DNA of 64,000 nucleotides from Blastocladiella emersonii ATCC 22665 (taxonomy: Eukaryota; Fungi; Blastocladiomycota), in NCBI GenBank assembly GCA_025594325.1, contig JANHCV010000008.1, positions 1,240,001 to 1,304,000 on the forward strand, read 5' to 3'. Under the pieces are notes generated by a model. It did not search any database and was not told the DNA's origin. It saw nothing but the letters and a program-made list of their open reading frames with translations. Both the position numbers and the translations under genes were made by a program. This document shows positions 33,728 to 64,000 of the stretch, one piece after another (the stretch's first letter is position 1; each line of letters starts with the position of its first letter).

Positions 33728-34660
33728 ATGAAACACACCACAATAACTTCCTGCAATGAATTGGCCGCAGTGCCGACCGGCTCGGGGCTACCAATTCCAC
33801 GGCAAGAGGGGACCCTGCTCTGTGCCATGAACTTGCGGCTGCAGGAGGTTCACCAAGCGCTTCGGACCCGCTTGCTCATCGCTCATCCGGGGCACATCCG
33901 ACCCGGTTTGCTTGCTTGCCCTATTGCCGATTCGCCAAGCGAGGCTCCAGCAGTCGAGCAGCAACCCGCCGTATCGCTCCCGCCCAAACTGCACCCGTCG
34001 TCGCGCCCGCCTCCGCCGACTGAGCTCTCCTCACCCGCACCCTGCGTCCAATCGGTGGTCTTCTCTGGACAGCTCAACGCCAACGAGCTTTTCTGCTGCA
34101 TCAGGCACCACGCGCCCAACTTCCGCACCCCGCGCGACTCGCGCGCCGGGCTCAAAAACCCGAGCGAGTTCCTCTCCGCATTACGCGCGCTTTTGCCCGA
34201 CGTGCCGCTCGCCCACCTCCTCATCGCCGCGCGGGCCCGGGTCTCGCCCATTTTCTACTGCACCTACGCTCCCCTGCTGCACGAAAGCACGCCCGATGAC
34301 GAGGCCGCGCGCGTCTTCGTTGGCATCGCGCACAACAAGTGGATGCCCGGCTGGATTCAGCGGTGGCAGGCGCTGCGGCCACGGTCCGATCGCCGTGCGG
34401 ACATGGCCGCGTACTTTGACGCCTTCTGCGGGCTTCTTGGCGAGGTCGTCGACCTGACGCCAGACTTGATGTACCAGCAGCATGTCAAGCACGTGTACAA
34501 CATCCGCGTCTACCAAGACCTCAAGTGGAGTCCGTTGCTTGCCCGTGAGCTCATTTCGAACCCAAACGCGTCGCTCTCTGACCTCGCCGACGTCTATGTG
34601 CGCTTGGGCACTGCGAGTGGCCAGGACCTAACACATCAAGTCAAGACCCCGTACGCGTAA
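33728..34660 (+). CDS. Gag-like family member A (subgroup I), 310 aa, ends after the capsid-like core with no knuckle
   Basis: Header TLLCAMNLRLQEVHQAL; core EFLSALRALLPDVPLAHLLIAARARV...YFDAFCGLL...QHVKHVYN...SLSDLADVY. Collinear with H and N. Confidence 0.7.
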   Translation: MKHTTITSCNELAAVPTGSGLPIPRQEGTLLCAMNLRLQEVHQALRTRLLIAHPGHIRPGLLACPIADSPSEAPAVEQQPAVSLPPKLHPSSRPPPPTELSSPAPCVQSVVFSGQLNANELFCCIRHHAPNFRTPRDSRAGLKNPSEFLSALRALLPDVPLAHLLIAARARVSPIFYCTYAPLLHESTPDDEAARVFVGIAHNKWMPGWIQRWQALRPRSDRRADMAAYFDAFCGLLGEVVDLTPDLMYQQHVKHVYNIRVYQDLKWSPLLARELISNPNASLSDLADVYVRLGTASGQDLTHQVKTPYA

Positions 34661-35046
34661 ACTCGCCGAGAACGTCTCCGCATAGCTTGAGACGCAATCG
34701 CGACGCGGGGCCAGTGAGCAACATGGGTGTACTCAAAGTGGCAGTCGCGTTTCCAGCGAACTATGGGTGAGTTCACCAGTTGAGCAGCCATCGACCATGG
34801 TCGGCTTGAGGATATCGGCACAGTCGGACGCAATAGTAAATTGACAATACTACTTCCAAATGCTCCTAATGTGCGATCGCTGTGAAGAGCGAGAGCGGAC
34901 GCGAGCGACACGTCCGCGTGACGTGCGAGTCATGACGATCGGGACGTGGCGCCGCTGCCTCCACCTCGCCGCCTAGCCACCTTGGCACGCTCCCTCTCCG
35001 AAATGACGCGATATTGCGGCTGTACTGACATGTAACTCGATGCAAC

Positions 35047-36519
35047 ATGGATGAATCAACACGTGAACACCAGCAACTATTAAAACGCCGCGAAGCAGCG
35101 CTTTTCAGCGCGCTCAGTTTGCGGGCGGAGCTGTGCCACACCACCCTCGTCATGCGCAGCGCTACTCTCGACGACATTCAACTAAAAGTCCTGCGGGATC
35201 GTGCCCGTGTCACTGCGGAGTCTCTTGACGAAGTTGAGAAGGCGGGCGCTGTTATGGAGGAGCAGCCCGCCGCTTCGTTGAATGAATCATCGAGCCCGCC
35301 TACTCCGACTGCTGACTCCTCGCCTACTCCGACCACGACTCTCACTTCTACCCCAGGCAAGACTCTCACTCCTACCTCGGACCTTACTATCCCGCTCGTT
35401 CCGAATGATGCTCCCGCGCCCACTTCGGTCACTTCGCCCACGTCTCCCTTGGCCACCGTTACTATGCCTATTCCGACCACTTCTCGGGCGACTCCTTCGG
35501 ACACCACTCTTAAACCCTCGATACCGGCCTCTCCGCTTTCTCCGCCATCACCATCGCCGCAATCCGGCAAAGCTCCAGCACCGGACCTCACCATGCTGGT
35601 GAAAAAACGGATGCCGTACTTGAACGTGGACCGTGCAAACATCCCGGCCAACATGAATATCAAGAGTCCGGTCCTTTTTCTCACTAAGCTTCGCGCCGTG
35701 GACCCACAAGCCAGCTTGGCATCGCTCCTACTCGCCGCGCGCTCGAGGGTTCGGCCCAGCTTCTACGCTGTGTACTCGGCATTGCTTTCTCAGTCGATGA
35801 CCGACGAGGACGCTGAAACCGCGTTCTGCCGCGCCGCCGATCCTCAATGGAACCCTGTTTGGGTCAGCAACTGGCTTAGGTTGTCGCCGGCATCACTTGA
35901 CAGGCTCAACAAGTTTTACACCACCTTTTGCAGCCTGCTTGCCGAAGTGGTCGCAGTGACGCCCGCTTTGAAAAAGGAGCGGCATATCAAGCTTCTGTTT
36001 GTGCTCAAGATCGAGGGTAGGCTTGGACCCGTCCCTGAATCGATCTGGCGAATTGTGGAGAACGACGACCAGTCGCTCGACGATATCGTTGCCGAAAACG
36101 ACCGGCTCCCTTTGCCACAAATGCCCTCACCAGCTGGCCGCGGGCTGGGGACTTGTGAGCTGTGCGACATTTTGGTTTCACAGACCAGACATGTCGCGAT
36201 GGCCGGTCATGGCACCAGGGCCTGCCCGCTGCTCAAGCAACCTGAAAGGATCGCAGAGTCGTTTGTTGCTGCCACACGCGCACTTGGCTTCACAGATCCC
36301 GTGCTGCCCTCGAAAGACGATGACGTTGCTCTCGTAACTGAGGAGTGGTGGCACCGTTTACAGCGGCATATTCCGCCCGGGACGAAGCACGCCCCTGGCC
36401 TCAACATCAAGCGGTGCCGTGTATTGCTGGTGGAATTGCTTCACCTCCCGGGTTCCCGGCGGACCGGCATTCTCTGGAAGATGTGGGCGCACGTCGCGAG
36501 GCTGACTGGGGCCGGCTGA
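35047..36519 (+). CDS. Gag-like family member B (subgroup II), 490 aa, intact
   Basis: Core FLTKLRAVDPQASLASLLLAARSRV...FYTTFCSLL...RHIKLLF; knuckle CELC-x14-H-x4-C; C-terminal IPPGT...KRCR...W domain. Confidence 0.8.
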   Translation: MDESTREHQQLLKRREAALFSALSLRAELCHTTLVMRSATLDDIQLKVLRDRARVTAESLDEVEKAGAVMEEQPAASLNESSSPPTPTADSSPTPTTTLTSTPGKTLTPTSDLTIPLVPNDAPAPTSVTSPTSPLATVTMPIPTTSRATPSDTTLKPSIPASPLSPPSPSPQSGKAPAPDLTMLVKKRMPYLNVDRANIPANMNIKSPVLFLTKLRAVDPQASLASLLLAARSRVRPSFYAVYSALLSQSMTDEDAETAFCRAADPQWNPVWVSNWLRLSPASLDRLNKFYTTFCSLLAEVVAVTPALKKERHIKLLFVLKIEGRLGPVPESIWRIVENDDQSLDDIVAENDRLPLPQMPSPAGRGLGTCELCDILVSQTRHVAMAGHGTRACPLLKQPERIAESFVAATRALGFTDPVLPSKDDDVALVTEEWWHRLQRHIPPGTKHAPGLNIKRCRVLLVELLHLPGSRRTGILWKMWAHVARLTGAG

Positions 36520-37299: not shown

Positions 37300-38730
37300 T
37301 TAGTCCTGCTTCCCTTTGCGAATCTCGCCGACCAGCGCCCACATACGCTGCAGCGTGGCCGACTCAACAAACTCGGCGGCGCGAAGGCACTTGATTGCCG
37401 GTTTGATGTGCGCGTGCTGCTCGCCCGTCGCCTCAAAGCGGGCAAGATACCCGCGCAGAAGCTCGCGCAGCGCGTCATCAGCGAGCGACTCACCGTAGGG
37501 CGCCGTAATTCGCTCGATGCGAAGGGCATGCTCGAGCGCCAATGCGAACTGACGAGCGTCGCGGCGACGGAAGCAATCGGGGAGAGGGTGCTGGCAGAGC
37601 GACTCGGGCTTGATGTCGAGCGTGGTGCAGAGAGGGCAAAGTTGCAGCGTCGATCGCGGAGGGGTCAAACAAAGGGAACATGTCTCGGCAAGACTTGTAA
37701 CGGCAAGACTTGAACGAACCGTTGACTGGGTAAGCTCCTTGACCAGGTCAGAAAGGTTCATGGTTTGGGCCCACAGGTCTTTTGCTTTGTGTTGTGTACT
37801 GCGATTGAGCCCTAGGTCGTTGCAATCGATTCCAAGCCCTTCGAGAAATAGGGTCTTGAGGTGCAATGTGCGGTCGACTTCAGCGCGAGAAATCTCGGGC
37901 GAAAGGAGCGCTAAGAACCGCTCCGCGAACCGCTCAACGGACTCGTGCTTGTTCCGCTCAAGCGTGCACCAGTCGGCCATCCAATCAGGCCGCCGGGCTG
38001 GATTGAAGGCATCGAGAAACACCTGGCGAGCTTGCGCGTCGGTCATGTCCGGACGTAGGAGTACCGCACAGCAGCGATAAACCGGAGTTGTGAGTAGCTG
38101 TCGCGAACAAAGCAGGGCACGAGCGAGTTCGCCTGGAGGACAGACGACCGCGGCTTTTTCAACAAATACGCGAAGTTTATGACGGATGGCTGTAGATGTA
38201 AGCTCGGTAACACCAGAATCAAATGAAGGCAAAGCTTGGCAGTCAGTCATGCGGGACCGAAACTCCTTGCCTGTGAGAGATCCGGTACTATGACGATCTG
38301 GAGGTTTACCATTATTCCGCTGAACATTAGTTGTCGGTGTCGGTAACTGTTGTGAATTCGAATGGGCCGAGACCGAGCTCAGGCGCGACGAAGCAGGGGA
38401 GCGAGAGCGCGAACGTGAACGCGAGTGAGAGAGGATCGACAAGCGCCCCAAGGTAGGCGGAGACCGCGACCGACGCCGGCCCTGCGTGTCAGACTGCGAG
38501 AGAGCCGGGGCGCGCTGCGGAAGCATGGCCACAGCGCTCGCGGACACGACGATGGAAGCTGCGGAGTGCAGCAGCGGGGGCACGCTCTCCGGAACCTGTT
38601 CGATTGTTGGCTGGATCCGCTGAGACATAATAGTTTTGAAATAGCGCGAGCGAACGTCCATGGCGCTGAGCAGGGTCTGCTGCTCGAGCGCCGACTTTGC
38701 CTGAATATTCATGGAGGGTGATTGATTCAT
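37300..38730 (-). CDS. Gag-like family member C (subgroup III), 476 aa, intact
   Basis: MHR-like LERNKHESVERFAERFLALL followed by HLKTLFLEGL and NLSDLVKEL; knuckle CPLC-x12-H-x4-C. Confidence 0.8.
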   Translation of the reverse strand: MNQSPSMNIQAKSALEQQTLLSAMDVRSRYFKTIMSQRIQPTIEQVPESVPPLLHSAASIVVSASAVAMLPQRAPALSQSDTQGRRRSRSPPTLGRLSILSHSRSRSRSRSPASSRLSSVSAHSNSQQLPTPTTNVQRNNGKPPDRHSTGSLTGKEFRSRMTDCQALPSFDSGVTELTSTAIRHKLRVFVEKAAVVCPPGELARALLCSRQLLTTPVYRCCAVLLRPDMTDAQARQVFLDAFNPARRPDWMADWCTLERNKHESVERFAERFLALLSPEISRAEVDRTLHLKTLFLEGLGIDCNDLGLNRSTQHKAKDLWAQTMNLSDLVKELTQSTVRSSLAVTSLAETCSLCLTPPRSTLQLCPLCTTLDIKPESLCQHPLPDCFRRRDARQFALALEHALRIERITAPYGESLADDALRELLRGYLARFEATGEQHAHIKPAIKCLRAAEFVESATLQRMWALVGEIRKGKQD

Positions 38731-38750
38731 GATTGCCGAATCCCTGCAGC

Positions 38751-39063: not shown

Positions 39064-40431
39064 TTACCGCCGCGTGCCTTGTAGCTGCGCGACGAGATCC
39101 CACACGCGGCGCAGTTCCGGCGGGTCGAGGTGCTCCGTCAGCTGGAGGTACTTGACTGCAGCGCCAATGTGTCCGAGACTTTCGCCATTTGCCTCGAAGC
39201 TCGTGAGATACTCGCGCATGAGCACACGCAGGGCCTCGTCTGACAGCCGCTCGAGGCGCGGCACGCGGATCCGCTCCACGCACAACGCGTGCTCGATGGT
39301 CTTTGCGAAGGGGTGGGGGTTGCGGCGGCGCTTGCACCGTTCGAGCGAGTGCCGGCACAGCTTGTCGGGCCGGCTGTCGAACGAGGAGCAGATCGGGCAA
39401 AGTGGTAGTTTCGATCGGAGAGACGGCGGGCGCGGGTGTGATGCATCTTCGCGTAGCAGAAATGCGCGGAGCGAAAAAGCGGGCCGCATGCTCGCAATTT
39501 TGTTGACCAGCGCGAAGAATGTCATGGGTTGGTTGAACCACAAAACCCGGAGTTCTCGATGCTTTTCAGCGCTCAGGCCAAGATTGCTGCAGCCGTGGCC
39601 CAGCTTAGCAAGGTAAATGAGCCGAAGGTGCGGGACGTTTTCGACCTCGTGGCGTGGAACGGCCGGCGCGACGAGGTGTAAGAACCGCTCCGTGAACCGC
39701 TCCGCTGACTCGCCCTGGTGCCGCTTAAGCGCACACCAGTCATCGAGCCACGGCGGCCGCCGATCCCGATCAAAGGCGTCAAGGAACACGCGGTGAGCTT
39801 TGCGCGCCTGTCATGTCGGCCCGTAGGAAGATCGCATAGCAAGTGAACGCGGATGTCTTGAACATGTTCCGAGCAAGCAATGTTGCACGAGTGAGATTGC
39901 CCGGGAGACATTCGGCTATAATCGTGTCCACGAACGCGCGCAGCGCGTCACGAAGGGACTGCGAGCCGAGTTCGTCGGCCTTGCACGGATTACACGCCGC
40001 CGAAGCTCCGTGTTGGTCAATGATGCAGCGGATGGATCGGGGTTTTTCGTATGAGATGAGCGCGTGAGCAGGCGTGACTGGTCACCCATACCCGGCAAGC
40101 CGTGTGCTTCGCGGCCGTGCGAGGGTGAGTGAGAGCGGGAGCGAGAGCGCGTGGGCGGGTGGAGATCACGATGCGAGTTCGTCGAAGCCAGTGATGATCT
40201 TGACCGCACGAGGGCTGCGGGTTGGGCTCGTGGGCGACCCTCAACGGACCCGATACTGAGCGTCGCCGAAGACCCGTCATATACGTAAGCCAAGCCCCAG
40301 GAGAACGTAATTCTTGGCTTGAGCCGCCACATAAGAGCAGTGCTGATAGATTGCAGCCGCAGATTCATGGATTGGAGCAAGAAAGTTGTGTCGTCTGGGC
40401 GTCGCTCCGAGGCGAAGCAGGCATCGTGCAT
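39064..40431 (-). pseudogene. Gag-like family member D (subgroup III), at least two frameshifts
   Basis: Header FLLQSMNLRLQSISTAL; a +1 insertion near 39800 (CAA A GCT); MHR-like LKRHQGESAERFTERFLHLV; knuckle CPIC-x12-H-x4-C. Confidence 0.8.
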
Positions 40432-40650
40432 GGTTGATACTATGAAGCGCGTTGCATGGAGTATTGCATGGTAGTCTACTGTCGGGTGCGTACTAGTGCG
40501 AGCGGGAGAGAGCGCTAAGGCGCGCTCCGTGGCACCGCGTGTGTCGCTCAAACACCCCACTAGAACCCCTGGTCGGGTTCGCCCTCGCGCCCGCGACGCG
40601 TTGCTCGCTCTCATTCACGCGTGCGCTCCTCGAAAGAGTAGACTATTTCA

Positions 40651-42183
40651 ATGAAGACTCCATGCAGCGCGACTCTCAACAGCACTTCGACGGGCTCGAG
40701 TGTAAATGAACTCAGCGCCGCACTCTCGCCGGCCACCGTCCAAAGTAACAACACGGCCACTGCCGCCGCGACTCTTTCGGCTATGAACTTGCGCCTCCAA
40801 TTTATCCACGCAGCATTTGAGTACCGCCGGCATCAGCCCGCGACAGTCGAACAGCTGGCCGTGGCTATCGCCAAGCATGAACTCTTCTCATCCCAACTGG
40901 CAGAGTTGGAAGTGTCCGTGGGTAGCACTGTTCGACCTCCAAATGAGCTTGCTGCTATGTCTGAGCCGCCGAGATGTTCCGAAAATGGCGATTCTGCGCT
41001 GCCCGCGCCGTCCGACTGCAGCCCCAAGCCGCACGAAAATTCGGGTCTTGCGCCTTACGCATCACCCAAACGGCCCGATCTGGATGCGAAGCTCGAGACA
41101 ACTTCTCGTGCCGCGTCACCGCGGGCTCTGACTTTGCGCGCCCAAGCCCACATCCCTCGGTCAACTCCCGCCGACCTCGCGCACCGAATCCGAACGACGG
41201 TGCCACAGTTTCCCGAGGTTTCTTCTAGCGATCCCACCGTCGCAACCCGCAGCGCCCGAGTCTTCCTCGCCGACTTGCACAGCCTGGTACCCGACGTCTC
41301 GCTTGCAACGGCGATGCTCAATGCGTACCCGATCCTTCCGCGCAAGCTGTACCCCTCGTTTGCAGTGACTTTGCGCGCGACGGCGCCGGACGAGGACGCG
41401 GAACGCGTCTTCCTCGCCGCTGTCAAACCCAACAAGTGGGGCTCCGAGAGACTCGAGCAGTGGCTTGCTTTGAAGCCGAGACCGGGGCAAACGGTGGCTG
41501 ACTTCTTTGCCGTTTACCGCAGGCAGCTCAAGAAGGTGATCACCCTTGATGACGCCGCGGAGCGAGAGTGGCACGTGAAAAAGCTGTTTCTCGATCGATT
41601 GTTCCTTGCGTTCGGCTACAATCCCGGCGACTCCCTTGCCATGACGCGAAACAGTTCCATTTCACTTACCGAGATGGCGGATTTGCTGGGGCACCTCGTC
41701 ATTCCTTTGTCGCGCCTGTCTGCGGAACCAGCCGATCTCGATGGCGGTGAGGGCGATCCGCCGAACTCGTCGGAACCGTTCTCGAATCAATTTCGAATCT
41801 CAGCCAGCGACCAACGCAGCTGCAGCTACTGCGAGCGACTTGGAGGCGAAGCAAGCACGTTCGAGTCGCACATCACAAAGGATTGCCTCGACCTTCAAGA
41901 CCTGCAATCGATTGCAATCTGCGTTGGATTCGCGGCTCGCTACGTGCACGCCCCAAGCCCGCCTCGATCAGGCCACATGAAGAACCATATCCAGGTGTAC
42001 AACGAGTTTGTGCAATGGCTAGCGTTCGTTCATAAGATACCTATACCGAAAGGGACAGCCGGGTCCAAGCGGTCCACAATCAAGGCCGCGCGGAGGAAGT
42101 CGTTTGCGCTGTGCGGCCTTCCAGCGGAGATCTTGAATGACCTGCTCCCGCTTGTGCTGGAACATATCCTTGACCTGTGGTGA
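40651..42183 (+). CDS. Gag-like family member E (subgroup IV), 510 aa, intact
   Basis: Header ATLSAMNLRLQFIHAA; LKPRPGQTVADFFAVYRRQL; WHVKKLFLDRL; knuckle CSYC-x12-H-x4-C; IPKGT domain. Confidence 0.8.
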   Translation: MKTPCSATLNSTSTGSSVNELSAALSPATVQSNNTATAAATLSAMNLRLQFIHAAFEYRRHQPATVEQLAVAIAKHELFSSQLAELEVSVGSTVRPPNELAAMSEPPRCSENGDSALPAPSDCSPKPHENSGLAPYASPKRPDLDAKLETTSRAASPRALTLRAQAHIPRSTPADLAHRIRTTVPQFPEVSSSDPTVATRSARVFLADLHSLVPDVSLATAMLNAYPILPRKLYPSFAVTLRATAPDEDAERVFLAAVKPNKWGSERLEQWLALKPRPGQTVADFFAVYRRQLKKVITLDDAAEREWHVKKLFLDRLFLAFGYNPGDSLAMTRNSSISLTEMADLLGHLVIPLSRLSAEPADLDGGEGDPPNSSEPFSNQFRISASDQRSCSYCERLGGEASTFESHITKDCLDLQDLQSIAICVGFAARYVHAPSPPRSGHMKNHIQVYNEFVQWLAFVHKIPIPKGTAGSKRSTIKAARRKSFALCGLPAEILNDLLPLVLEHILDLW

Positions 42184-42645: not shown

Positions 42646-43982
42646 ATGGGCGAATCAACGCCCGAACACCAAAGACTTGTTGAGCGCCGTAAAGCGACGC
42701 TCGTCACTGCACTCAATCTGCGAGCAGAGCTATGGCAGACCACTCTTGCTTTACGCAGCGCCTCGCTTGGCAGTGCTCAACATAAGATTCTGGAGGCGAG
42801 TGCGCGTGCCACGGCCGAGTCACTGAGCGAGGTCGAGGCGGCAAGTCTTCTGATTGAGGCGCAGCTCGCCGCGCCGCTGCTCGAGCCATCGCACTTGCCT
42901 ACCAGGGCCATCACTCTTGCGCTTACTCCGGCCCCCGCCCGCACACTTACTCTGACCTCCGCTTCCACGCCTTCTCCGGTCCCCGCTGTCATGCATTCTC
43001 CATTCCCCGTTTCCACGGCTTCTCCAGCAAGCACTTGCAAGCTTCTTTCGGCGACCGCTCTCGCGACTCCGCTACCAACCCCACAGCTTCCTCTGCCCTT
43101 GCCACCGCCGCAAGTCGACATCTCCCCCAAGCCAGACCTTGCCACCCTGGTCATGCAACGCTGCCCGTACTTCAACGTGGAGCGAGCAAACGTCCCGGCC
43201 GAGAAGAATATCAACAGTCCGGTCCTTTTTCTCAGTAAGCTTCGCGCGGTGGCCCCGCAAGCCGGCTTGGCATCGCTGCTAATCGCGGCACGCTCGCGGG
43301 TTCGGCCAAGCTTTTACACTGTGTACTCGGCAATGCTATATCCGTCAATGCCCGACGAAGAGGCCGAACTCGCTTTCTGCCGCGCAGCCGATCCCGAATG
43401 GAAAACGTCTTGGGTTAGCGATTGGCTTGCGCTGGCGCCGAGGTCCCTCAGCAGGATCGACGCTTTTTACGCAACGTTTTGCCAGCTGCTCTCAGGGGTT
43501 GTCAAGGTGACACCCGAGTTCAAACAGCAGCGTCATATCAAATTGCTCTTAGTAATCAAGATTGAGGGTGAGCTTGGTACACTTGAACTCCCGCCGGCCG
43601 CACGCTCCCCGACAGTTCGAAAATTTGCGTGCTATGCAATAATGACGATCAAGTCGCAATGGCTGGGCATCACACCGAGGCTTGTCCGCTGCTTGATCAG
43701 CCTGAAGTCCTCGCCGAGTCGTTTGTGTCCGCTGCACGCGCACTTGGTTTTGCGGACCCCGTGAAGCCCTCGCAGGACGACAACATTGCCGAGATAACCG
43801 AGGATTGGCGGCGGCGCATTCAGAAGGGACAGATTCCGCCCGGCACGACGAAACCCGCTGCACTCAATATTAAACGGTGCCGTTTCATGCTGGCGGCGTT
43901 ACTCGGCCTCCCGCGGTCGCGACAGATCGGCACACTGTGGGACATGTGGGAGCGGGTGGCGAAGCTGACCGGGAACGGCTGA
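42646..43982 (+). pseudogene. Gag-like family member F (subgroup II), deletion and frameshift near 43580
   Basis: Close paralog of B, missing the segment after KIEGELG. The knuckle CVLC-x10-H-x4-C and C-terminal domain are in the 43629-43982 frame. Confidence 0.8.
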
Positions 43983-54026: not shown

Positions 54027-55111
54027 TAATTCACCGGTCCATGTCCGACTTGGAGGCCGAGAACGCGTTTTGCCGCGCGGCCGACATCGAGTGGAACAGC
54101 AGATGGGTCGGCGTGTGGCTTTCGCTGGCCCCGTGGTCCCGCAGCGAGCTTGGTGCATTCTATCGCTTGTTTTGCGCGCGGCTGCGTGAGGTGGTCGCAG
54201 TCACATCCAAGCTCGAGCGGGAGCGGAACATCAAACTTCTTTTCGTCGAAAAAATCGAGAGCAAGTTCGGTCCAGCCCCAGAATCTGTGCACGCAATGGT
54301 GGAAAATGACGAAAGATCGCTTGCCCAACTCGTTGCCGAATACGACCGTGCCTTGCGCAATGACTCGCATCTGGCGAGTGCAACTGTAGCTCTCACTCCT
54401 TTCTCGATCTCAAAACGACCAGACTCGCGCTTACCGCTCGTCGCGCCGGCGCCTGCTCACTCTCGATCAGCCTCACGATCTCGGAAGCGACCAAGGTCGC
54501 CTTCTCGCTCGCGTTCCAAAATTCTTATCTGCCCTGCACCGGTTCCGCGAGCTCCTGTTCGGTCGCGCTCAAGATCTCTCTCAAGCTCGCGCCCACGGCC
54601 TCGCTCGCTCTCGCGGGATCACTCCCAATCACAATTGCAATCTAAGTCGAAACTTGCGCGATCCTCAACTCATCGCCGTGACCTGTCGCCCCGGAGCCGT
54701 TCTCGCCAACGATTCCAATCGCCCGCGCGTTCTGAAGCCGCAGCAAACTGCCACCTGTGCTTTTATCCAACCGCCCGGTCTGACCACGACTCGATCCCAA
54801 TTCATTGCACTGAGGCTTGTCCGCGCTTAGAAGAGCCGGGGAAGCTCGCCCGCACGTTTGTGTCGGCAGTACGCGCCTTTCGGCTCGAAAGTCCGGCGGT
54901 ATCGCAGCCTGAAGCCGACTTGGCCAAATTGACGGGAGCGTGGCTGGATCAGCTCCGCGCGGCGCGGATCCCGCCCAGAACCTCTCGCGAAACTTCGCGC
55001 GACATGAAGTGGTGCCGCGGCATGCTCGGGGTATTGCTCAAGCTCTCCTCCGCGCGGCAGGATCGTGTTTTGCGCGACATGTGGGATGAGGTTGCGAAGC
55101 TGGTCGAGTAG
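54027..55111 (+). pseudogene. Gag-like family member K (subgroup II), 5' half removed at the Harbinger right end
   Basis: IHRSMSDLEAENAFCRAADIEW begins immediately after the TIR and aligns to LRPSMSNYEAKNAFRRAVDPAW (O). RS tract; knuckle CHLC-x14-H-x4-C; DMKWCRGML. Confidence 0.85.
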
Positions 55112-55705
55112 CTGTGCTGCCGCGCGATCGTTCGTTCGATCTCCAGCCGCGAGTTGTGGAACGTCGTCAAAGGTGAGATGCTGGGGGAAAAAAAAAACTG
55201 ATTATTTAATTTGCACACGCAGGAGTAGTTCAGCGAGCCGACTTGCGACGCATGATCCCCGACGTCCCGCGCCAGTGCTGCTGAATGCGTACTCTAACCG
55301 TGCGGTTCACTGAGCCCACGACGGGGAATGGCGCCGAACTCACGCGCGCCATGGGGGCAGCGGCCCAATCAGCTTGAAAATTCAAGGTCCCGCGAGGGCT
55401 TGCGTACATCGCAGAAAACAGCGATAAACGCGTGGGGATTGTTGAACGCGCTGCTACGGCTCCCGGCTTGTGTGCCTATCCGCCCTGCATCACCTGTTGA
55501 AGTCGAACGAGGATAAGATGCCGCATGATAGATACATGAGCTATCTTGTAAATGTAGTGGCGGCGCGGTCGAACGCTCGCGTGGCTCACCGTCGAGTGGG
55601 TAGCACGTAATGTGGCGCAGCTCGAGCAAGCCGTTGAAAAGCCGCCAACCTCGTCGCCACGGCATGCCCCGCTCCCAAATGCTGCTGCACCATCGCGATA
55701 AACAA

Positions 55706-57277
55706 ATGGAGACTTCATGCAACGTGGCCGGTGACTATCGGGATATCAGCTTGGACCGTGCTCACGCACTCGTCGCGCCGTTCCTGGCGGTTCGATCTAC
55801 CAGCCCTCCTCGCGACTTGGCCGAGGCGCGGGAACTCTCTTTTGCCGCAACGCTTTGCACTATGGACCTGCGTATTCGGTTGATGAGGGCTATTCTCGCT
55901 CCGCAACTTGCTCAGCCAAAGCCGCCCACCGTCGATTTGGCGACCCAGAGCGCTCTTTCACAGCAGCTGCGGGACTTGGAACTGCTCCAAGAGCGCTTGA
56001 GCTCGTCTTCATGTGCCAAGCGTACGACCCTCGCTTTGTCCAGCATCGCTTGCGGCGCCACCTCAGCCATTTCTAATCCGTCACAACCTTTACTCCAAAC
56101 ACACCATCGACGTTTAACGGTGTCCGAGCAACCGAATCAAACGCAAGAGCTTTCCATGCCAACTTCTCGTACATACATCTCAAGCCCGGCTCCGTCGACC
56201 TTACCCGTTCCGAGTCCGCCCGCTGTGACTCGTACGGCTTCGGGCACCTCAGATTCCTCGTCTGCTTCTATTACGGCCTTTTGTCGCTCTCTCGCTCAAA
56301 ACCGCAATCAAGTCTTTTTCACGATCAAGGCAAGCGGCCCGCGCTATCCCACTGCACTCCTGCCTCCCGCCGAAGCGGTTGCCCAGGCCCAGTCCTTTCT
56401 TGACGACCTTCGACGCCTTGTACCAACGACGCCGCTTGCGGAGGCACTTCTCCAGTCGTACATTAATTTGCCGCGCCGGCTGTACCGTTCGGTTGCCGTC
56501 CGCCTGCGCGAGACTTCGTCCGATGAGGAGGCCCAGCGCGTGTTCCTTGCTGCTGCCAACCCGCGCACCCCAGTTCCGCGTGTTCTCGAGCTGTGGCTCG
56601 CGATCGTCCCACAACCAAACAAAACCGTGGCCGAGTTCTTTGCCCGATACCGCACGCTGCTTCGTGGTCTCGTCACGCTCTCGCCCGAACTCGAGTCTTC
56701 TTGGCACATGAAAAAGCTGTTTGCCGACAAGCTCTTTATCGCGTTCGGGTACAACCCTGGCGACACGTTGGCCGTGGTCCGTGCGCCAGAAGTCTCGCTC
56801 TCGGACATGGCCGCCTCGCTGGGCGAGCTCCGGATTCCCGCTCACGGACCTCCGGCGGATCGGTCAACCCGATCTGTGGCAGTCAATTTAAGCTCGCGCG
56901 GCACCGCCGGCACTACTTGCGTCTACTGCGTTCGAGCCCAGCCGCGCAACGTCGACCCGTCGCACGACACTGCCGCGTGTCCGATCTTGAGCAATCCCCG
57001 GTCTATCGCCTTGACGGTCGTGACTGCAGCGCGTGCGCTCGACCTCCCTCGCCCGCCTCGCGCTGAGCGCTCGGCTCCTGGCGAGCAGGTTCGCACGGCA
57101 GCACTCAAGTACCTCAGCCTCGTGCGAGACCGCGACATTCCCAGGGGCACGGCGTCCGTCAAGGCGGCGGCTATCAAGGCGGGGCGAGCCAGCGTGGCCG
57201 CGCTCCATGGGCTCACGGATTCCATGTTTGAGCGGGTCACGGCGGATGTCTGGAAGGCGGTCCTCGCTATCTCTTAG
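55706..57277 (+). CDS. Gag-like family member L (subgroup V), 523 aa, intact; closest paralog of G
   Basis: Identical start context CGATAAACAAATGGAGACTTCATGCAACGTG; SWHMKKLFADKLFIAFGYNPGDTLAVVR identical to G; knuckle CVYC-x11-H-x4-C. Confidence 0.8.
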   Translation: METSCNVAGDYRDISLDRAHALVAPFLAVRSTSPPRDLAEARELSFAATLCTMDLRIRLMRAILAPQLAQPKPPTVDLATQSALSQQLRDLELLQERLSSSSCAKRTTLALSSIACGATSAISNPSQPLLQTHHRRLTVSEQPNQTQELSMPTSRTYISSPAPSTLPVPSPPAVTRTASGTSDSSSASITAFCRSLAQNRNQVFFTIKASGPRYPTALLPPAEAVAQAQSFLDDLRRLVPTTPLAEALLQSYINLPRRLYRSVAVRLRETSSDEEAQRVFLAAANPRTPVPRVLELWLAIVPQPNKTVAEFFARYRTLLRGLVTLSPELESSWHMKKLFADKLFIAFGYNPGDTLAVVRAPEVSLSDMAASLGELRIPAHGPPADRSTRSVAVNLSSRGTAGTTCVYCVRAQPRNVDPSHDTAACPILSNPRSIALTVVTAARALDLPRPPRAERSAPGEQVRTAALKYLSLVRDRDIPRGTASVKAAAIKAGRASVAALHGLTDSMFERVTADVWKAVLAIS

Positions 57278-57790: not shown

Positions 57791-57914
57791 GCGACGCGCC
57801 TCAGTCTCCGGCTCACGTGTTGGGCGAAGGAGGTCGTTCCCTGGTGCTCGCCCGACGCGCTTTCCCGCTTCTCTCGTGTCGATCTCCCCGCTGCTCATGC
57901 GCACACTCAACTCT

Positions 57915-58955
57915 ATGCATTCAATCATGTTAGCATCGGATCATGGATATATGAACTCGGCACGAGATGCGGCCCACCTTGCATCTTTTGGCGTTTGTCC
58001 GACCAGCGGCCTTTCCGTGTTGGAGGTCGCGTTGAGCGAGCAGCAACTGCGTTTGTCGTTGAACCGCCGACTACACACTGTTCGAACGTCGCTCGACGGT
58101 CGCTTGATGAACGCTTCCGAACTGCCGCGGGAGCAAAGCATGCGTCGCGACGCCCCGCGCGATGACGTTGACGCCAGCAAGTTCGAGTCTCCTTCAGTTT
58201 CACGCGATCAGTTACACTCGGTAGCACCCGACCTTTTGCCATTGCGGGAAGTAGCTTATTGTCATACTACGCGCAAACATGACGCGCCTCCAATGTCCGC
58301 TTCGGTTCCGAAGGTGTCCGGCGGAGTATCGACTGCCACGCGGAAAGCAAACAAGGCACAGCGTAACTATGGCGTACTGGAACCGTCTCTCGTTCATCGA
58401 ATCAAGGCATCGGTTCCAATTTTTTGGATCACCCGCTCTCGCACTGACTGGGAACCGTCGACCGACAATCCGCACGCGTTCCTCGACGCTTTGCGGACCG
58501 CCGCACGAGATGGACCGCTGGCGTCGCTCTTGATTGCAGCGCGGTCCAGGGTAACGCCGAGCCTCTACTGTACCTACGCCGTTGCGATCTTTCGAGCCAC
58601 TCCCGACTCCGAAGCCAAACCCATCTTTCTCGGGATTGTCAACGGGACGTGGGAACCTGAATGGGTTGCACGCTGGGCGGATATCCGCGTTTGCTCAAAG
58701 TCTGGACAGGACATAGTCCGCTATTTCACAGCCTTCCGCAACCTTTTATCCGAGGTCATTGACTTGCAGCCAAGTGCTCTTCACAATGAGCAGATCAAGC
58801 ACGTCTTCAACAATCGCATCTACTACACCCTCCACTGGAGCCCCAAGTCTGTCCGGCAACTCGTCGTGGACCCGCGTGCTTCGCTCAGCGACGTGGTTAA
58901 CGAGTACGTCCGGCTCGCTGACCTCCCGCGTCCAAGCCAAAGCGCGGAATTTTGA
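57915..58955 (+). CDS. Gag-like family member N (subgroup I), 346 aa, ends after the capsid-like core
   Basis: PLASLLIAARSRVTPSLYCTYAV...EQIKHVFNNRIY...SLSDVVNEYVRL is collinear with H. The stop comes before the RS tract and knuckle. Confidence 0.7.
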   Translation: MHSIMLASDHGYMNSARDAAHLASFGVCPTSGLSVLEVALSEQQLRLSLNRRLHTVRTSLDGRLMNASELPREQSMRRDAPRDDVDASKFESPSVSRDQLHSVAPDLLPLREVAYCHTTRKHDAPPMSASVPKVSGGVSTATRKANKAQRNYGVLEPSLVHRIKASVPIFWITRSRTDWEPSTDNPHAFLDALRTAARDGPLASLLIAARSRVTPSLYCTYAVAIFRATPDSEAKPIFLGIVNGTWEPEWVARWADIRVCSKSGQDIVRYFTAFRNLLSEVIDLQPSALHNEQIKHVFNNRIYYTLHWSPKSVRQLVVDPRASLSDVVNEYVRLADLPRPSQSAEF

Positions 58956-59428: not shown

Positions 59429-60970
59429 ATGAGCGGCGATGCATCTTATCCACGCGAGCTCGTCGAACGCCGCAAACAAACCCTATTTACCGCGCTGGAC
59501 CTCCGAGCGCATCTGTTTCGGGACGCTCTCGCCCTGCGCTGCAATCCACCGGGCGAACCGCGGCATCTAGAGGCCCTGCAAACGCGCACTGTTGCAACTA
59601 CGAAGGCGTTGTTCGAGGTCGAAGAGAAGGGCGCGGAGCTTGAAGCCCAGCTTGCTGCTTCGCAACGTAATCGACCACGCTTACCAGGGGCTGTGTGCGA
59701 AAGCCTCTCCGAGATTGCTTCACATCCTTGTTTGCCGCCACCCGCCGCTTGCGCCGACTTGGACCTCGTCGCATTGGTGGATCGCGACGCACCCTACTTT
59801 CGTTCCAAACGCGCAGACGTCCCGGTTAACGAAAACTGTCGCCATCCAGCCCAGTTCCTCCCCCGACTTCAGGCCGTGGCCCCACGCACGAGCCTGGCGT
59901 CGCTGCTTCTTGCGGCGCGCTCGCGCGTTCCCTCAAACATTTACACGGTCTACTCGGCCCTCCTGCGGCCATCCATGTCCAACTACGAGGCAAAGAACGC
60001 ATTCCGCCGTGCGGTCGATCCTGCGTGGAACAGCGGCTGGGCACGACTTTGGATCGCGCTTGCACCGCGATCCGATTGTGGAGTTGTCGCTTTTTACGAG
60101 GAGTTTCGTCACAAACTCGACGAGGTGGTCCAAGTGACTTCCGAGTTGGAGCGAGAGCGGCACATCAAGCTGCTGTTCGTTGAGCGGATTGAAAGTAAGC
60201 TTGGACCTGCCTCACAGTCCGTCTGGCAGGCCGTGGAAGATGGAAGCCGGTCGCTTACTGATATCGTTGCCGAGTATGACCAGAGCCTCCCCTCCACGCA
60301 AAGCGCCTCTCGTGCAAGGTCCAATTTTCGCGAAACTGGAAGACGCCGCGCCCGCTCGCGCTCGCGCTCGCCACCTGACTTCTCATCTTCGAGTGGATCG
60401 CGTAAACGCTTATTTTCTCGAACGCGATCCAGATCACGTCCGCGTCAACGCTCATTTTCTCGGACACGTATCAGATCGCCCTCGCGGCGACGCTCACCGT
60501 CACGCCGCTCGAGGGATCCGGCCTCGTCATCTGCGTATATTGCTCAGCAGCGACGTTTTAACCTCAGCGGCGGTCTCCTCCACCGCATGGAGACGTGCGT
60601 GCTTTGCAGCGACCCATGCTTTCCTGACGTTCGGATGTCACAGGCTTCTCACCACACCGAAGCCTGCCACCTCCTTGACCAGCCGCGCGTGCTCGCGCGC
60701 TCGTTCTTGAATGCTCGTGATGGATTTCAGCTCGCGGACATCGCGTTGCCGCTGCCACTGCCGCTTAATGCTGCTGATCTGGTCGAGCTGACGGCCGAGT
60801 GGGTGCACCGGCTTCGTGAGGCGCGGATCCCTCCTGGAACTCGCGCCTCCGTCGTCCGCGAGATGAAATGGTGTCGCGGGATGACCAAGGCGATGCTCGG
60901 GCTCTCGCGACCGCGGCGGTATGAAGTGTTACGCAGCATGTGGGAGGAGGTGGTCAAGCTGGCCGGATAA
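59429..60970 (+). CDS. Gag-like family member O (subgroup II), 513 aa, intact, RS tract
   Basis: Header QTLFTALDLRAHLF; FYEEFRHKLDEVV; RHIKLLFVERIE; knuckle CVLC-x14-H-x4-C; IPPGT...EMKWCRGM. Confidence 0.8.
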   Translation: MSGDASYPRELVERRKQTLFTALDLRAHLFRDALALRCNPPGEPRHLEALQTRTVATTKALFEVEEKGAELEAQLAASQRNRPRLPGAVCESLSEIASHPCLPPPAACADLDLVALVDRDAPYFRSKRADVPVNENCRHPAQFLPRLQAVAPRTSLASLLLAARSRVPSNIYTVYSALLRPSMSNYEAKNAFRRAVDPAWNSGWARLWIALAPRSDCGVVAFYEEFRHKLDEVVQVTSELERERHIKLLFVERIESKLGPASQSVWQAVEDGSRSLTDIVAEYDQSLPSTQSASRARSNFRETGRRRARSRSRSPPDFSSSSGSRKRLFSRTRSRSRPRQRSFSRTRIRSPSRRRSPSRRSRDPASSSAYIAQQRRFNLSGGLLHRMETCVLCSDPCFPDVRMSQASHHTEACHLLDQPRVLARSFLNARDGFQLADIALPLPLPLNAADLVELTAEWVHRLREARIPPGTRASVVREMKWCRGMTKAMLGLSRPRRYEVLRSMWEEVVKLAG

Positions 60971-61335: not shown

Positions 61336-62303
61336 CTATGATCGGCGAGAGCGCGTGCGATACAACCGACCACCGTTCGCAGGAGCACCAGACGCCCGCA
61401 TCGTCTCTCGCACCAGCGAATCAAACGACACGCCGTCCACGCAGCGGTCCTGCAGCAGCTTGTACGCGCGCTGGCCGATCCCAATGTCGCCGCAACCGAG
61501 GTCCCTGCGATTCCGTCCGAGCTTGTCCAGATACATGGCTTTGATGTGCGCGATCGAGTCGATGCGGTCGCGAGGGATATTGTTCGCAACGACAGCCAAG
61601 TATCGGTCTGCAAAGAGATCGGCCGGCTCGTGCGGATGGCGGATCAGCGTGCACCAGTCCGCGAGCCAGGCGGGCCGATGGACGGGATCAAACGCGTCCA
61701 AGAACGCACGGCGGGCAGTTCAAAAATGGCGCGAGCGAGCACAAGCCCACGGGCGAGTTCGCCGGGCGGGCAGACCGCGGCGAGTTTGTCAAGGAATTGG
61801 CGCAAGCTAAGCTGAAGGGCGGGCGAGGAGAGCTCGGTACCGCACGGGTCGAATCGCGGACCGGGTTTGCAGGTCAGGACGCGCTCCCGGAGATGCCGAT
61901 TTGCCAATGGAGCAGGGTCGAGCGGACACGAAACGTCCCTCTGCGGAGGTAATGGGGAGCGCGGGTAGGGCGGAGGCGGCGAGTGAGAGCGAGGCGAAGG
62001 ACGGGCCGGATCGACTGTCACATAAATTCCAGGCGAAAACTGACCATTCGGGAACATAATCGTATTCGATTGGCTGACAGTAAAGCCGGGATGGCCCATC
62101 GCGACAAGCCCCGCAGACGTCGGCAGCGGCTGACTTTGCAAAGTTGCCCGATCTGTCACTTGAATGCGCCACGACAAACCCGCGCGAATGTGCTGCAGCA
62201 TCGCATTGAGGGAGTTCAGCAAGAGCGGCTCCGTGTAACTCTGGTCCACTGCCGCGCCTTCGGGGATGACAGAGTACACCATGAGGCCGAGAGTATGTTG
62301 CAT
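61336..62303 (-). pseudogene. Gag-like family member P (subgroup III), frameshifted, knuckle lost
   Basis: Header LLLNSLNAMLQHIRAGL; AAVCPPGELARGL matches C; LIRHPHEPADLFADRYLAVV (MHR-like) is in a second frame. Confidence 0.75.
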
Positions 62304-62491
62304 AGAGTTACATCAACGTCCATTCCCCAGCATAACCGACGGGAGCAGAAAACTTGCGTTGCGTGCGGCGAGCGCGTCAAAGTCGCGCCAACTGGCGGTC
62401 ACCTGACGCGTTGCCCCCCGCGTTTCCCTTCGTGAGCGCGATTTGTTCGCCCTCTCACTCCCCGCCTCCCTCACAAGCTCATGCAAAACAA

Positions 62492-63443
62492 ATGGATACC
62501 CGAACAGACTTGCCGCAACGGTCTCACGGGCTCGACGCCCTCCCCGAGTTCCTGCTTGCTGCGATTCTCCGATTCGCGAGGCCGCGACGTGTCGTTTGCA
62601 CGACGGCTTCCGCGCTTCTCAATGCTGCCCGCGATTTGCCCACACAATCGGCGTGGATGGCCCGGTACTTACGCTCCAGATTGCCAATTCAGATCGTGCA
62701 ACGGTATTCATTCAATTTTCGGATCATTGGTACCGACCTCGGTGCCTACTTTGAGCGGCGCTTTATCGCCTCCACAATAAAAACACCGCCCAAAACCGTC
62801 GGTAATCCAGCCCTCGACGAGCCACTGTTCTTCGCTTCCGCGTTCAAATGGCTTGCACAGCGGACTCGCCGCGTTCTGTTCCGCCCAGGTGAAGCTGTTG
62901 CTTCGCTTGGCTCGGCCCTTTTGCAAATCCGAGACATTCAAACGATGCTCCGGCCGCCATTTACTTCGACCAAACGGCACCGCGGCCACTTGTGAGTGCT
63001 GCGATCTTGCAACTCAAATCGCGTGGTTTTCCGCGATCGAATCTATTGTTCAGCTTCAGTCCTGTACCCGGTGGACGCAGCTACTGCCTTCGCTTTTCAA
63101 ATCCGTCGTTGCAACTTTCTCGAAACCCGGCGGACTGGCTTCACACACTGGGTACGAGAACACAAGCACATGCGCTTTCGCGGAGCGGTACCCGCTGCTC
63201 CGCCTGCTCGCGATGCTCGTTGCCGCGGGCGTTGATGGTTTCTTCCCCTTTGACGAGAGCAAGCGTCGCAGGGTTCCGTTAGACGTCTGGCAGCTGGTCC
63301 CGAACGGCGCGCTCGACCGCACTCGCGATCTTGATTGGGTCCGCGCGACCAAGCGCGTCGTGTCGGGCAACCAGGCTGTCCTCTTGGAGCTTCGCCGGTG
63401 CGCACCCGTGCTCATGTCTCAGCTGGAGCAGCCGGGCGAGTGA
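62492..63443 (+). pseudogene. F-box-like protein, frameshifted near 62990
   Basis: The N-terminal LDALPEFLLAAILRFA fits the F-box signature LxxLPxE(I/L)LxxIL. Coding-like sequence continues in the 62853-63443 frame. The GTGAGT donor tested does not give a phase-compatible splice. Confidence 0.45.
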
Positions 63444-63686
63444 GTATGTGTTTCTGTGTTTTCGCGACATATTATTTCATCTGCATGCATAGCGGCTGGC
63501 GCAAACGCTTCGCTTCCCGGCACTGTAAGAGTGACAAGCGAACGCGATGGTCACCTCCGCGTGACATTTCCGTCAGCGCTGTCGGCTGTGGCGTAGCGTC
63601 CGCCGATCGGCCGTCGACGCTAAGATGAATCCCTCACTCAGAGCAAAGCGCCCCACCACCCGCGCTGCTATGTAACTTGAAGCATT

Positions 63687-64000
63687 ATGGACAGCGCATC
63701 ATATGAAACTCATAGGCCTATTGAGCGCCGCGTGGAGACGCTATTTACATCGCTCCACCTGAGAGCGCAGTTGACCCGTGAATCGCGAGCCGTGATGCCC
63801 TGTTCTTGCGCCTCAGTCTGCTCCCTGGTGAGCAGCTAGCGAGGCTTCAAGCTCGCATGATTGATACGACCAAGGTTTTGAGCGACGCCGACGAAACGGG
63901 CGCTGTAGCACAAGCAGAGCTTGCAGCTGTCTCGCGTGAGTCGGTGCCAGTGCCCGTTCCCATAGTCGAGCGGGATCGCACTTCAACCCCCTCGTCCCAA
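63687..64000 (+). pseudogene. Gag-like family member Q (subgroup II) N-terminus; 14-nt insertion; runs off window
   Basis: RRVETLFTSLHLRAQL then, after the frameshift, RDALFLRLSLLPGEQLARLQARMIDTTKVL aligns with O (RRKQTLFTALDLRAHLFRDALALRCNPPGE...TTKAL). Confidence 0.7.

Follow-up and report, generated by a model that had tools for sequence, protein, structure and literature searches.

Stand-alone Gag-derived genes in tandem arrays of the zoosporic fungus Blastocladiella emersonii

Stand-alone gag genes that derive from a Ty3/gypsy-type element appear to have been amplified in tandem and kept under selection in Blastocladiella emersonii ATCC 22665, a zoosporic, water mould-like fungus of the Blastocladiomycota, and their products may interfere with retroelement capsids. 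We hold this explanation as a whole with moderate confidence. The descent of the family from Gag and its gag-only state are well supported, and domestication and a defence role are what we infer. The window studied is a stretch of 64,000 nucleotides of contig JANHCV010000008.1 of assembly GCA_025594325.1 (PMC9730499), to which its hexokinase ORF is an exact match.

Using tblastn and profile searches of the window, 15 gag-like copies were located on both strands at 33,722-64,000 and none 5' of 33.7 kb (Table 1). The tandem array described in the initial annotation was therefore recovered, with its 16-17 copies reduced to 15 plus one possible C-terminal remnant situated between copies N and O. 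Seven copies are full-length ORFs of 476-595 aa, the same lengths as given before, two are short ORFs (A and O) that terminate past the core, and six are broken or truncated. Four to five subgroups could be discerned where five had been named, namely A/H/O, B/F/M/P/R, E/G/I/N and C/D/Q, the last being on the minus strand in every case. The order of subgroups repeats along the array, G-H being mirrored by N-O. Both peptide strings quoted in the initial annotation were found, at 39670-39729 and 37834-37863 of the minus strand. In the NCBI annotation, the gene models across the array region are fragmentary, mis-spliced and presented as spliced 'hypothetical proteins'.

Table 1. Family copies and neighbouring features in the window (positions counted from its first nucleotide)
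Feature	Position	Strand	Description
Orphan ORF	2961..5705	-	914 aa, outside the array; N-terminus resembles the family N-terminal module (hhalign E=3e-4), remainder unrelated to the family
Copy A	33728..34660	+	310 aa; N-terminal part and core, lacking zinc/C-terminal domain; A/H/O subgroup; profile E=3e-57
Copy B	35047..36519	+	Full-length, intact, 490 aa
Copy C	37300..38730	-	Full-length, intact, 476 aa; minus-strand subgroup
Copy D	39067..40614	-	C-type, broken, 2 frameshifts; contains the first quoted string
Copy E	40651..42183	+	Full-length, intact, 510 aa
Copy F	42646..43979	+	B-type, broken, 1 frameshift
Copy G	44902..46485	+	Full-length, intact, 527 aa; core at 45505-46050 modelled (pLDDT 95.8)
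Copy H	46653..48440	+	Full-length, intact, 595 aa from first ATG (open frame begins 46482); long Arg/Ser-rich linker includes a 51-nt tandem repeat
Copy I	48697..50388	+	G-type, broken, 1 in-frame stop
Harbinger/PIF DNA transposon	52526..54027	-	DDE_Tnp_4 transposase; 98.9% identity to window 1-1505; right end directly adjoins copy M
Copy M	54023..55111	+	B-type, 5'-truncated, lacking first ~245 residues; open 356-aa frame with Arg/Ser-rich linker, zinc motif and C-terminal helices
Copy N	55610..57277	+	Full-length, intact, 555 aa; nearest paralogue G (dN 0.25, dS 0.69)
Copy O	57876..58955	+	359 aa; N-terminal part and core, stops past core as in A
Copy P	59429..60970	+	Full-length, intact, 513 aa; Arg/Ser-rich linker
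Copy Q	61339..62312	-	C-type fragment, 1 frameshift, lacking both ends
Copy R	63720..64000	+	B-type N-terminal piece cut by the window end; 1 frame change in visible part

Multiple alignment of the seven full-length proteins revealed a common domain order in all of them, as had been claimed. From the N-terminus, a short helix, a Pro/Ser-rich linker and a helical core of ~180 aa are followed by a second linker, which copies H, M and P have in an Arg/Ser-rich form, and then by a Cys-Cys-His-Cys motif and ~90-100 helical residues. The zinc motif reads C-X2-C-X10-14-H-X4-C in 24 of 27 full ORFs, with all four ligands invariant in 23 of 23 sequences, and the classical C-X2-C-X4-H-X4-C knuckle occurs in none of the 27. 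The initial annotation had compared the core with the major homology region of retrotransposon capsids followed by a CCHC knuckle. The motif does lie on a predicted strand-turn-helix and a Cys-Cys-His-Cys module does follow the core, but the module is a long-loop variant without the classical spacing, and an extra helical domain stands downstream of it.

The origin of the family is revealed by a Ty3/gypsy-type element that is still resident in B. emersonii. Its Gag-Pol ORF (L010:17338-22572, minus strand, 1744 aa) lies beside another family array and encodes RVP, RVT_1, RT_RNaseH, Integrase_H2C2 and rve domains, and the element ends in LTR-like repeats (98%, 6.3 kb apart). When family profiles A3 and A6 were compared with residues 1-655 of this ORF using hhalign, Gag residues 119-270 and the family core could be superimposed across 151-152 columns with a probability of 93.8-96.6% (E=1.7e-7, 6e-9 and 6.6e-10), while reversed and shuffled controls gave E>=0.14. 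Among 58 other non-family ORFs, comparable matches were obtained for two split family pieces in L008/L009 alone, the rest reaching E=2.7e-4 at best. The zinc module and C-terminal helices could also be aligned (E=8.7e-5), and the element carries the same long-loop type of motif (C-X2-C-X14-H-X4-C). Family and element therefore share a homologous core of ~150 residues and the order core, linker, Cys-Cys-His-Cys module, helices, in support of the Gag-like core proposed at the outset. They differ in that the family consists of stand-alone head-to-tail genes devoid of protease, RT, RNase H, integrase and LTRs, with an N-terminal module of its own and, in some members, Arg/Ser-rich linkers. Core identity is only ~17%, which makes co-assembly of family proteins with this element doubtful.

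General domain searches were less telling. At the curated threshold, Pfam returned no significant Gag-family match for the array family. The match to Retrotrans_gag (PF03732) stayed below the cut-off in its best member (14.5 bits against 24.1, E=0.044), and another member gave a sub-threshold match to PNMA (E=0.19, or E=0.025 when the core alone was scanned), both coinciding on one core segment. Sequence searches against the PDB retrieved no significant match to solved capsids. The predicted core contains 11 helices and one strand-turn-helix; in Foldseek searches with it, 49 of the top 50 PDB matches were HIV-1, HTLV-1, BLV or dArc1 capsids, all weak (E>=0.3, TM<=0.36), and the top BFVD matches, also weak, were retroviral Gag and caulimovirid coat proteins. 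These scores, each short of significance, are what an unrelated all-helical orphan with a coincidental likeness to Gag would give, a possibility that we regard as extremely improbable in view of the hhalign homology with its clean controls, the rare zinc spacing common to both proteins and the collinear downstream domain. Furthermore, the Gag of the resident element itself has no Pfam match, so that the failure of the family in Pfam is uninformative.

The gag-only state could be followed within and beyond the window. In agreement with the initial annotation, protease, RT, RNase H and integrase domains were absent from the non-family ORFs of the window and LTR-like direct repeats from 30-64 kb. 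Spacers between copies measure 36-922 bp and are thus too small for pol, and nucleotide similarity among copies is restricted to coding regions. Outside the window, pol domains adjoined none of 41 sampled copies, save for the independent element described above. It could be argued that selfish, gag-only retroelements of the non-autonomous kind, whole or in pieces, inserted side by side and lost all recognisable termini by erosion, and that the host does not maintain them as genes. The copies are intronless, compared with an average of about two introns per gene in the B. emersonii genome (PMC9730499). Besides, their codon usage is not host-like, a solitary copy (L007) is flanked by conserved host genes on a different contig, the genome contains an autonomous relative, and LTR pairs would be hard to recognise at dS>=0.5. 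Nevertheless, insertions would hardly produce head-to-tail arrays with spacers down to 36 bp and a recurring subgroup order, and neither repeats nor poly(A) tails or target duplications were found at the window copies. Genuine mobile DNA in this genome exists as copies 98.9-99.4% identical, yet no family pair is younger than dS 0.5, and most ORFs are still open at such an age, which is unexpected of dead insertions. We therefore consider side-by-side insertion improbable.

Selection analysis points to old genes that have been maintained. The 12 closest pairs show dN/dS of 0.30-0.44 at dS of 0.50-1.36, and no younger pair exists among 50 family ORFs, indicating that the duplicates are old and selected. 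In the G-N pair, dN/dS is lowest in the core (0.25) and the zinc/C-terminal part (0.29) and rises to 0.44-0.63 in the linkers. The family thus displays the combination by which co-opted gag genes are recognised, that is, a gag-derived ORF on which purifying selection acts (dN/dS 0.25-0.44) in the absence of pol and LTRs. Were the copies functionless decaying relics with open frames surviving by chance, a neutral 1.5-kb frame should have gathered many stops at dS>=0.5, and neither the low dN/dS of all 12 closest pairs and of the folded domains nor the invariant zinc ligands would be expected. The broken or truncated state of six of the 15 window copies, a third-position GC near that of the spacers and the fragmentary NCBI models speak for such decay, which we nonetheless judge highly improbable.

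Base composition sets the family apart from conserved host genes. Third-position GC is 0.63-0.69 in the family, 0.89-0.97 in conserved host genes and 0.88 in the ORF of the resident element. The family values are close to the spacer GC of 0.57 and far from those of host genes, suggesting low expression or non-host-like status; by this measure, codon usage would argue against high expression. In 298 kb of sampled genome, the family ORFs with 300 aa or more numbered 50, nearly all on contig JANHCV010000008.1, where several arrays of paralogues with 15-70% identity are dispersed across about 1 Mb. Elsewhere, an exhaustive HMMER profile search of 1.84e9 representative proteins gave 24 matches, 23 of them from B. 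emersonii. The 24th, an ENA repeat protein, looks unrelated to the family. No convincing orthologue from another organism was thus retrieved, in a search that unannotated genes of relatives would escape, and IMG/VR and JGI metagenomes yielded no family relatives. Long-term domestication across species accordingly lacks support. The initial annotation had called the copies host genes that arose by local duplication and not by insertion: the duplication part stands, as the copies look like old local duplicates under purifying selection and not like decayed insertions, but their 'host' or 'domesticated' status is not established, given the missing orthologues and the third-position GC.

The same evidence of Gag homology and selection would fit a cellular job apart from retroelement control, such as the binding of RNA or its packaging in zoospores (Arc/PEG10-like), a regulatory function or a role in chromatin. 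For instance, the Arg/Ser-rich linkers of H, P and M recall RNA-processing proteins, and a split member in L008/L009 runs on into an HMG-box ORF. In addition, ACGCGT is enriched within 200 bp upstream of starts (10 observed versus 2.3 expected, in 6 of 11 regions), suggesting host-type promoters. We regard such a job as unlikely, since a housekeeping co-option with 50 or more diverged paralogues and recurrent gene loss would be unusual, codon usage departs from that of conserved host genes, orthologues were not found outside the species, and the known fungal co-opted gag genes, Crtg12-14, all in Dikarya, are each single copy (Wang and Han, 2021; PMC8321522).

In the explanation that we prefer, a Ty3/gypsy-type LTR lineage still resident in B. 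emersonii supplied the Gag, with its capsid and zinc module, from which the family descends, and the family has lost protease, RT, RNase H and integrase as well as the LTRs. Old tandem and small-block duplications then spread the genes as arrays along about 1 Mb of a single contig, with purifying selection preserving the structured domains. Of the working parts of Gag, the proteins seem to have retained an all-helical, two-lobed core resembling capsid, then a linker that is flexible and in many cases Arg/Ser-rich, a zinc module with four ligands and, last, a tail of helices, so that self-association and nucleic-acid binding would be their most likely activities. The role that we prefer for them would be to interfere with the assembly of related retroelement capsids, a conflict that could drive diversification. 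The initial annotation had likewise proposed a defence role (Fv1 or Ty1 p22-like) or an Arc/PEG10-like one, both of them conjectural. The setting for restriction is circumstantial, comprising a related autonomous element resident in the genome and diversified paralogues. More tentatively, over 50 diversified Gag-derived proteins encoded largely on one chromosome might form a combinatorial defence against retroelements or viruses or else serve as capsid-like RNA carriers, a possibility that we hold to be rather doubtful.

Mouse Fv1, sheep enJS56A1 and yeast Ty1 p22 are Gag-derived restriction factors for which interference has been demonstrated, and each is encoded by a single gene or is the element's own product in truncated form. 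Like them, the family consists of Gag-derived proteins without pol in a genome that still hosts a related autonomous element, and interference of the Fv1/Ty1 p22 type would be our favoured functional model. It differs in that its interference is putative and its resemblance to the only resident element encountered is low. Arc/dArc, PNMA, RTL/SIRH and Crtg12-14 are likewise gag-only ORFs that lack pol and LTRs and evolve under purifying selection, and PNMA additionally weakly matches one family member on the homologous segment. However, conservation of those genes extends over whole families of species (PMC8321522), whereas this family comprises at least 50 ORFs of one species with no detectable orthologues elsewhere and with non-host-like codon usage. 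Tandem amplification of a co-opted gag gene is also known for plant Crtg9 (PMC8321522), but the scale here is different, with tens of paralogues in several arrays of a zoosporic fungus.

This case is set apart by a gag-only family that has expanded into tandem arrays with dozens of paralogues, intact and under selection, an unusually large amplification for a stand-alone capsid-derived gene. Stand-alone gag genes are known mainly from animals (Arc, PNMA, RTL, Fv1), and we know of no comparable gag-only family in Blastocladiomycota. Being invisible to Pfam and mis-modelled in public annotation, the family illustrates that screening for transposon co-option by domains can overlook entire families. 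Its diverged capsid-like proteins also form a natural series in which the evolution of Gag after release from pol can be studied. If the defence or RNA-carrier role is true, fungi would have invented large-scale capsid co-option independently, and the family would parallel animal Arc, PNMA and Fv1 as a separate case, on a much larger scale, in an early-diverging zoosporic fungus.

A single protein family, traced by ORF listing and by tblastn with the seven long ORFs, fills the window from 33.7 to 64 kb on both strands, and neither approach found a family copy upstream of 33.7 kb. The initial annotation counted 16 to 17 Gag-like genes in this array; the number is corrected here to 15 copies, lettered between A and R, plus a possible weak C-terminal remnant between N and O. 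The two sequence strings that it quoted were both located in the window, and its seven intact genes with a common domain order are borne out by the ORFs and by alignment of their products (alignment A1). Spacers between the copies measure 36–922 bp. The absent 5' half of copy M was searched for to the left of the adjoining Harbinger element and was not found.

Copies of the Gag-like family in the window, with the coordinates of associated features in the window and at other loci (L002–L010) of the same genome
Feature	Position	Strand	State or content
Copies B, C, E, G, H, N, P			full-length uninterrupted genes, 476–595 aa from the first ATG
Copies A, O			short ORFs ending just past the core; no downstream room for the missing part
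Copy D			damaged, two frameshifts
Copy F			damaged, one frameshift
Copy I			damaged, one in-frame stop
Copy M			damaged, 5'-truncated
Copy Q			damaged, one frameshift, both ends missing
Copy R			damaged, cut by the window end, one frame change
Harbinger/PIF copy	window 1–1505		cut by the window start
Harbinger/PIF copy	window 52526–54027		inside the array, abuts copy M
914-aa ORF	window 2961–5705	minus	no Pfam domain
Orphan tandem families	window 7153–8752; 14380–16041; 18976–22474; 22738–25407; 28648–29697 with 33056–33349		upstream of the array
Hexokinase ORF	window 30791–32221		intronless, identified by Pfam
P0001	window 46482–50388		annotated 'protein' fusing copies H and I
P0002	L002:10001–13458		annotated 'protein' fusing three adjacent cores
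Herpes_ori_bp helicase genes	L003:19559–22111; L008:3410–6499		near arrays
Repeated 10.4-kb segment	L008:6855–17226; L009:6855–17267		on contigs 9 and 8
IML1/DEPDC5 inverted duplication	L007:1–2636; L007:12065–14700		2.6 kb
Ty3/gypsy-type element	L010:16350–22699		apparently intact LTR retrotransposon
Gag-Pol ORF of this element	L010:17338–22572	minus	1744 aa

According to alignment A1, the intact proteins share one architecture. It starts with a short N-terminal helix and a linker rich in Pro and Ser, which lead into a helical core of about 180 residues; beyond a second linker come a Cys-Cys-His-Cys motif and some 90–100 further helical residues. In H, P and M this second linker is rich in Arg and Ser, and that of H contains a 51-nt tandem repeat. 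The CCHC knuckle proposed earlier holds for the ligands but not for their spacing, since 24 of 27 full family ORFs carry the long-loop variant C-X2-C-X10-14-H-X4-C and none of the 27 has the classical zinc-knuckle arrangement. Across 23 of 23 sequences the four ligands never vary; the helical tail is conserved, and the linkers are flexible.

Domain searches alone gave little indication of Gag ancestry. No Pfam family reached threshold with the seven intact proteins or with 27–30 members scanned singly, so that the proposed match to Retrotrans_gag (PF03732) failed, its best value being E=0.044 in one member. Another member matched PNMA weakly (E=0.19, or E=0.025 when the core alone was scanned), and the two weak matches coincide on one segment of the core. 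Comparison of PDB sequences with four family profiles (A1, A3, A6 and A7) returned only chance-level matches, such as a Nanos zinc finger (E=0.89) and designed helical proteins. AlphaFold modelled the core with high confidence (pLDDT 95.8, pTM 0.89); the model contains eleven helices, with a strand-turn-helix at the segment previously likened to the major homology region. In Foldseek, 49 of the 50 leading PDB neighbours were capsids of HIV-1, HTLV-1 and BLV or the Drosophila Arc1 capsid domain, and the top BFVD neighbours were retroviral Gag and caulimovirid coat proteins. Capsids thus rank first, as had been anticipated, but the best E values are 0.3–0.5 and TM does not exceed 0.36; therefore, the ranking of this predicted fold would by itself be only a lead. 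A two-domain model gave noisy Foldseek output.

Decisive evidence came from a pol-linked relative of the kind that the initial annotation suggested looking for. At locus L010, 2.4 kb from another array of seven genes, an ORF encodes retroviral protease, reverse transcriptase, RNase H, an integrase zinc domain and an integrase core in Ty3/gypsy order. A 40-nt direct repeat (98% identical, copies 6.3 kb apart) lies at the edges of the element, consistent with LTR ends. The 655 residues preceding the protease we take to be Gag, from their position in the polyprotein. In hhalign, family profiles aligned with this Gag over 151–152 columns (probability 93.8–96.6%; E = 1.7e-7, 6e-9 and 6.6e-10), its residues 119–270 matching core positions 27–180 of copy G, while reversed and shuffled controls never fell below E=0.14. 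When 58 further non-family ORFs were compared, similar matches came only from the halves of a family member split in two at L008/L009, and the rest were no better than E=2.7e-4. The zinc module and following helices also align (E = 8.7e-5), and the motif of the resident Gag, C-X2-C-X14-H-X4-C, has the unusual spacing common to the family.

With weak Pfam and PDB scores on one side and this separation from the controls on the other, a resemblance to Gag by chance is scarcely credible. The resident Gag itself lacks any Pfam or PDB sequence match and returned nothing as query of a word-seeded protein search; because it too is invisible to Pfam, the failure of the family there is no argument against Gag ancestry. 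The Gag-like nature of the core is accordingly upheld by the profile comparison, and the family is very probably a homologue of the gag carried by the resident Ty3/gypsy-type lineage, from which it is most simply derived.

The copies themselves are not LTR retrotransposons. No pol domain was present in the non-family ORFs of the window, and neither LTR-like repeats nor poly(A) tails were detected at its copies, in agreement with the earlier description of genes free of pol and LTRs. Nucleotide similarity between copies is confined to the coding sequence and, in the youngest pair, about 110 bp upstream. In addition, the subgroup order recurs (N-O mirrors G-H), C-type copies always lie on the opposite strand in both the window and L002, and some arrays form their own local clades. 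Such an arrangement agrees with duplication in tandem and in small blocks rather than with independent insertion, as was proposed from the first reading. It is improbable that the copies are eroded non-autonomous elements.

True mobile DNA at these loci, in contrast to the family duplicates, exists in near-identical copies. The window carries a Harbinger/PIF DNA transposon (DDE_Tnp_4 transposase) twice; the copies are 98.9% identical, so the element looks recently active, and the 10.4-kb segment shared by L008 and L009 is 99.4% identical. The latter contains the split family member, whose zinc and C-terminal part runs on into an ORF with an HMG box at its end. Near arrays, two large genes for Herpes_ori_bp (origin-binding protein) helicases share 80.8% DNA identity; at L008 the helicase adjoins an integrase-core (rve) ORF, and together they may form an undescribed mobile element. 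The recurrence of these helicase genes near arrays raised the idea of an endogenous large DNA virus as the source of the family; it was rejected because conserved host genes lie in between and because the family has its relative in a retrotransposon Gag.

The 12 closest pairs among 50 ORFs have dS of 0.50–1.36 and dN/dS of 0.30–0.44. For the pair G-N, dN/dS is 0.25 in the core and 0.29 in the zinc/C-terminal domain, compared with 0.44–0.63 in the linkers. By these values the duplications are old, and purifying selection acts on the folded parts, the outcome for which the dN/dS check had been recommended. Open frames of 1.5 kb would not be expected to survive that much neutral divergence, and despite the damaged copies it is very improbable that the family consists of neutral relics.

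Codon usage is less host-like. GC3 of the family is 0.63–0.69, near the spacer GC of 0.57, whereas conserved genes (hexokinase 0.96, IML1, chitin synthase, P450 and others) reach 0.89–0.97 and the Ty3/gypsy-type ORF 0.88. Over the window, L005, L007 and L009, the Harbinger transposase and other orphans fall together with the Gag-like family at 0.6–0.75. A regional effect was rejected, because the solitary copy at L007 on contig 1 has a GC3 of 0.70 among neighbours at 0.91–0.97, indicating a property of the genes. The low GC3 suggests low or conditional expression.

The family also appears to be restricted to this fungus. The assembly of B. emersonii ATCC 22665 (Blastocladiomycota) comprises 34.27 Mb in 21 contigs (PMC9730499), of which JANHCV010000008.1 (GCA_025594325.1) accounts for 1.80 Mb. 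The hexokinase ORF is an exact match to a gene on that contig and sets the window at about positions 1,240,001–1,304,000. An exhaustive HMMER search of 1.84 billion representative proteins gave only 24 matches: 23 belong to B. emersonii, where they are named 'hypothetical proteins' and with few exceptions are encoded on this contig, and the remaining one, a repeat protein (ENA), looks unrelated. Two of the best matches are mis-spliced public gene models fusing adjacent copies; public annotation gives the family spurious introns and leaves most copies unannotated. Word-seeded protein searches with A1 and with residues 205–527 of G returned nothing, family ORFs being largely uncalled as genes there, and the E/G/N sub-alignment found no relatives in IMG/VR and JGI metagenomes. 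Among eleven other genome places examined, further arrays occur on the same contig at about 333, 554, 727, 851, 876, 948, 983 and 1153 kb, and the 298 kb sampled contain 50 ORFs of the family with a length of 300 aa or more. The solitary copy stands among conserved genes and is the only one seen on contig 1; its block is bracketed by an inverted duplication of part of the IML1/DEPDC5 gene (99.96% identical), which may reflect either a genuine rearrangement or an error of assembly. Given the non-host-like GC3 and the absence of orthologues elsewhere, the term 'domesticated' in the initial annotation is not demonstrated.

Other orphan families precede the array. Their members share 27–51% aa identity, one family has a DUF4470 domain, and three of their ORFs have GC3 of 0.61–0.70. 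This region and the array together have the look of a nursery in which lineage-specific genes are duplicated. The N-terminus of the 914-aa ORF resembles the N-terminal module of the family (hhalign E=3e-4) and its remainder is unrelated; such a module may be common to different orphan families. With 66 sites against 35 expected, the window is enriched in the palindrome ACGCGT, which is 4.4-fold denser within 200 bp upstream of family starts (10 against 2.3 expected, P ~1e-4). Sites precede copies A, C, E, H, I and N, and the palindrome may be a shared promoter element.

By its sequence, the family is best regarded as a distant member of the Ty3/gypsy Gag superfamily that would work like it, resembling the co-opted gag genes Arc, PNMA, RTL and fungal Crtg12-14. 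Those genes are conserved across species, the fungal ones being single copy (PMC8321522). Blastocladiomycota lie outside the tree of a Pfam-based fungal screen for transposon co-option (PMC10799480), whose approach would have missed this family anyway. A cellular role unrelated to retroelements would suit the purifying selection; such a role is rather unlikely. Somewhat ahead of it, though tentative because the core shares 17% identity with that of the one element seen, stands possible interference with the capsid assembly of related retroelements, favoured on account of the resident autonomous relative and the strong diversification of the paralogues. At the molecular level, the proteins would associate with one another by way of the capsid-like core and contact nucleic acid with the zinc module and basic linkers.
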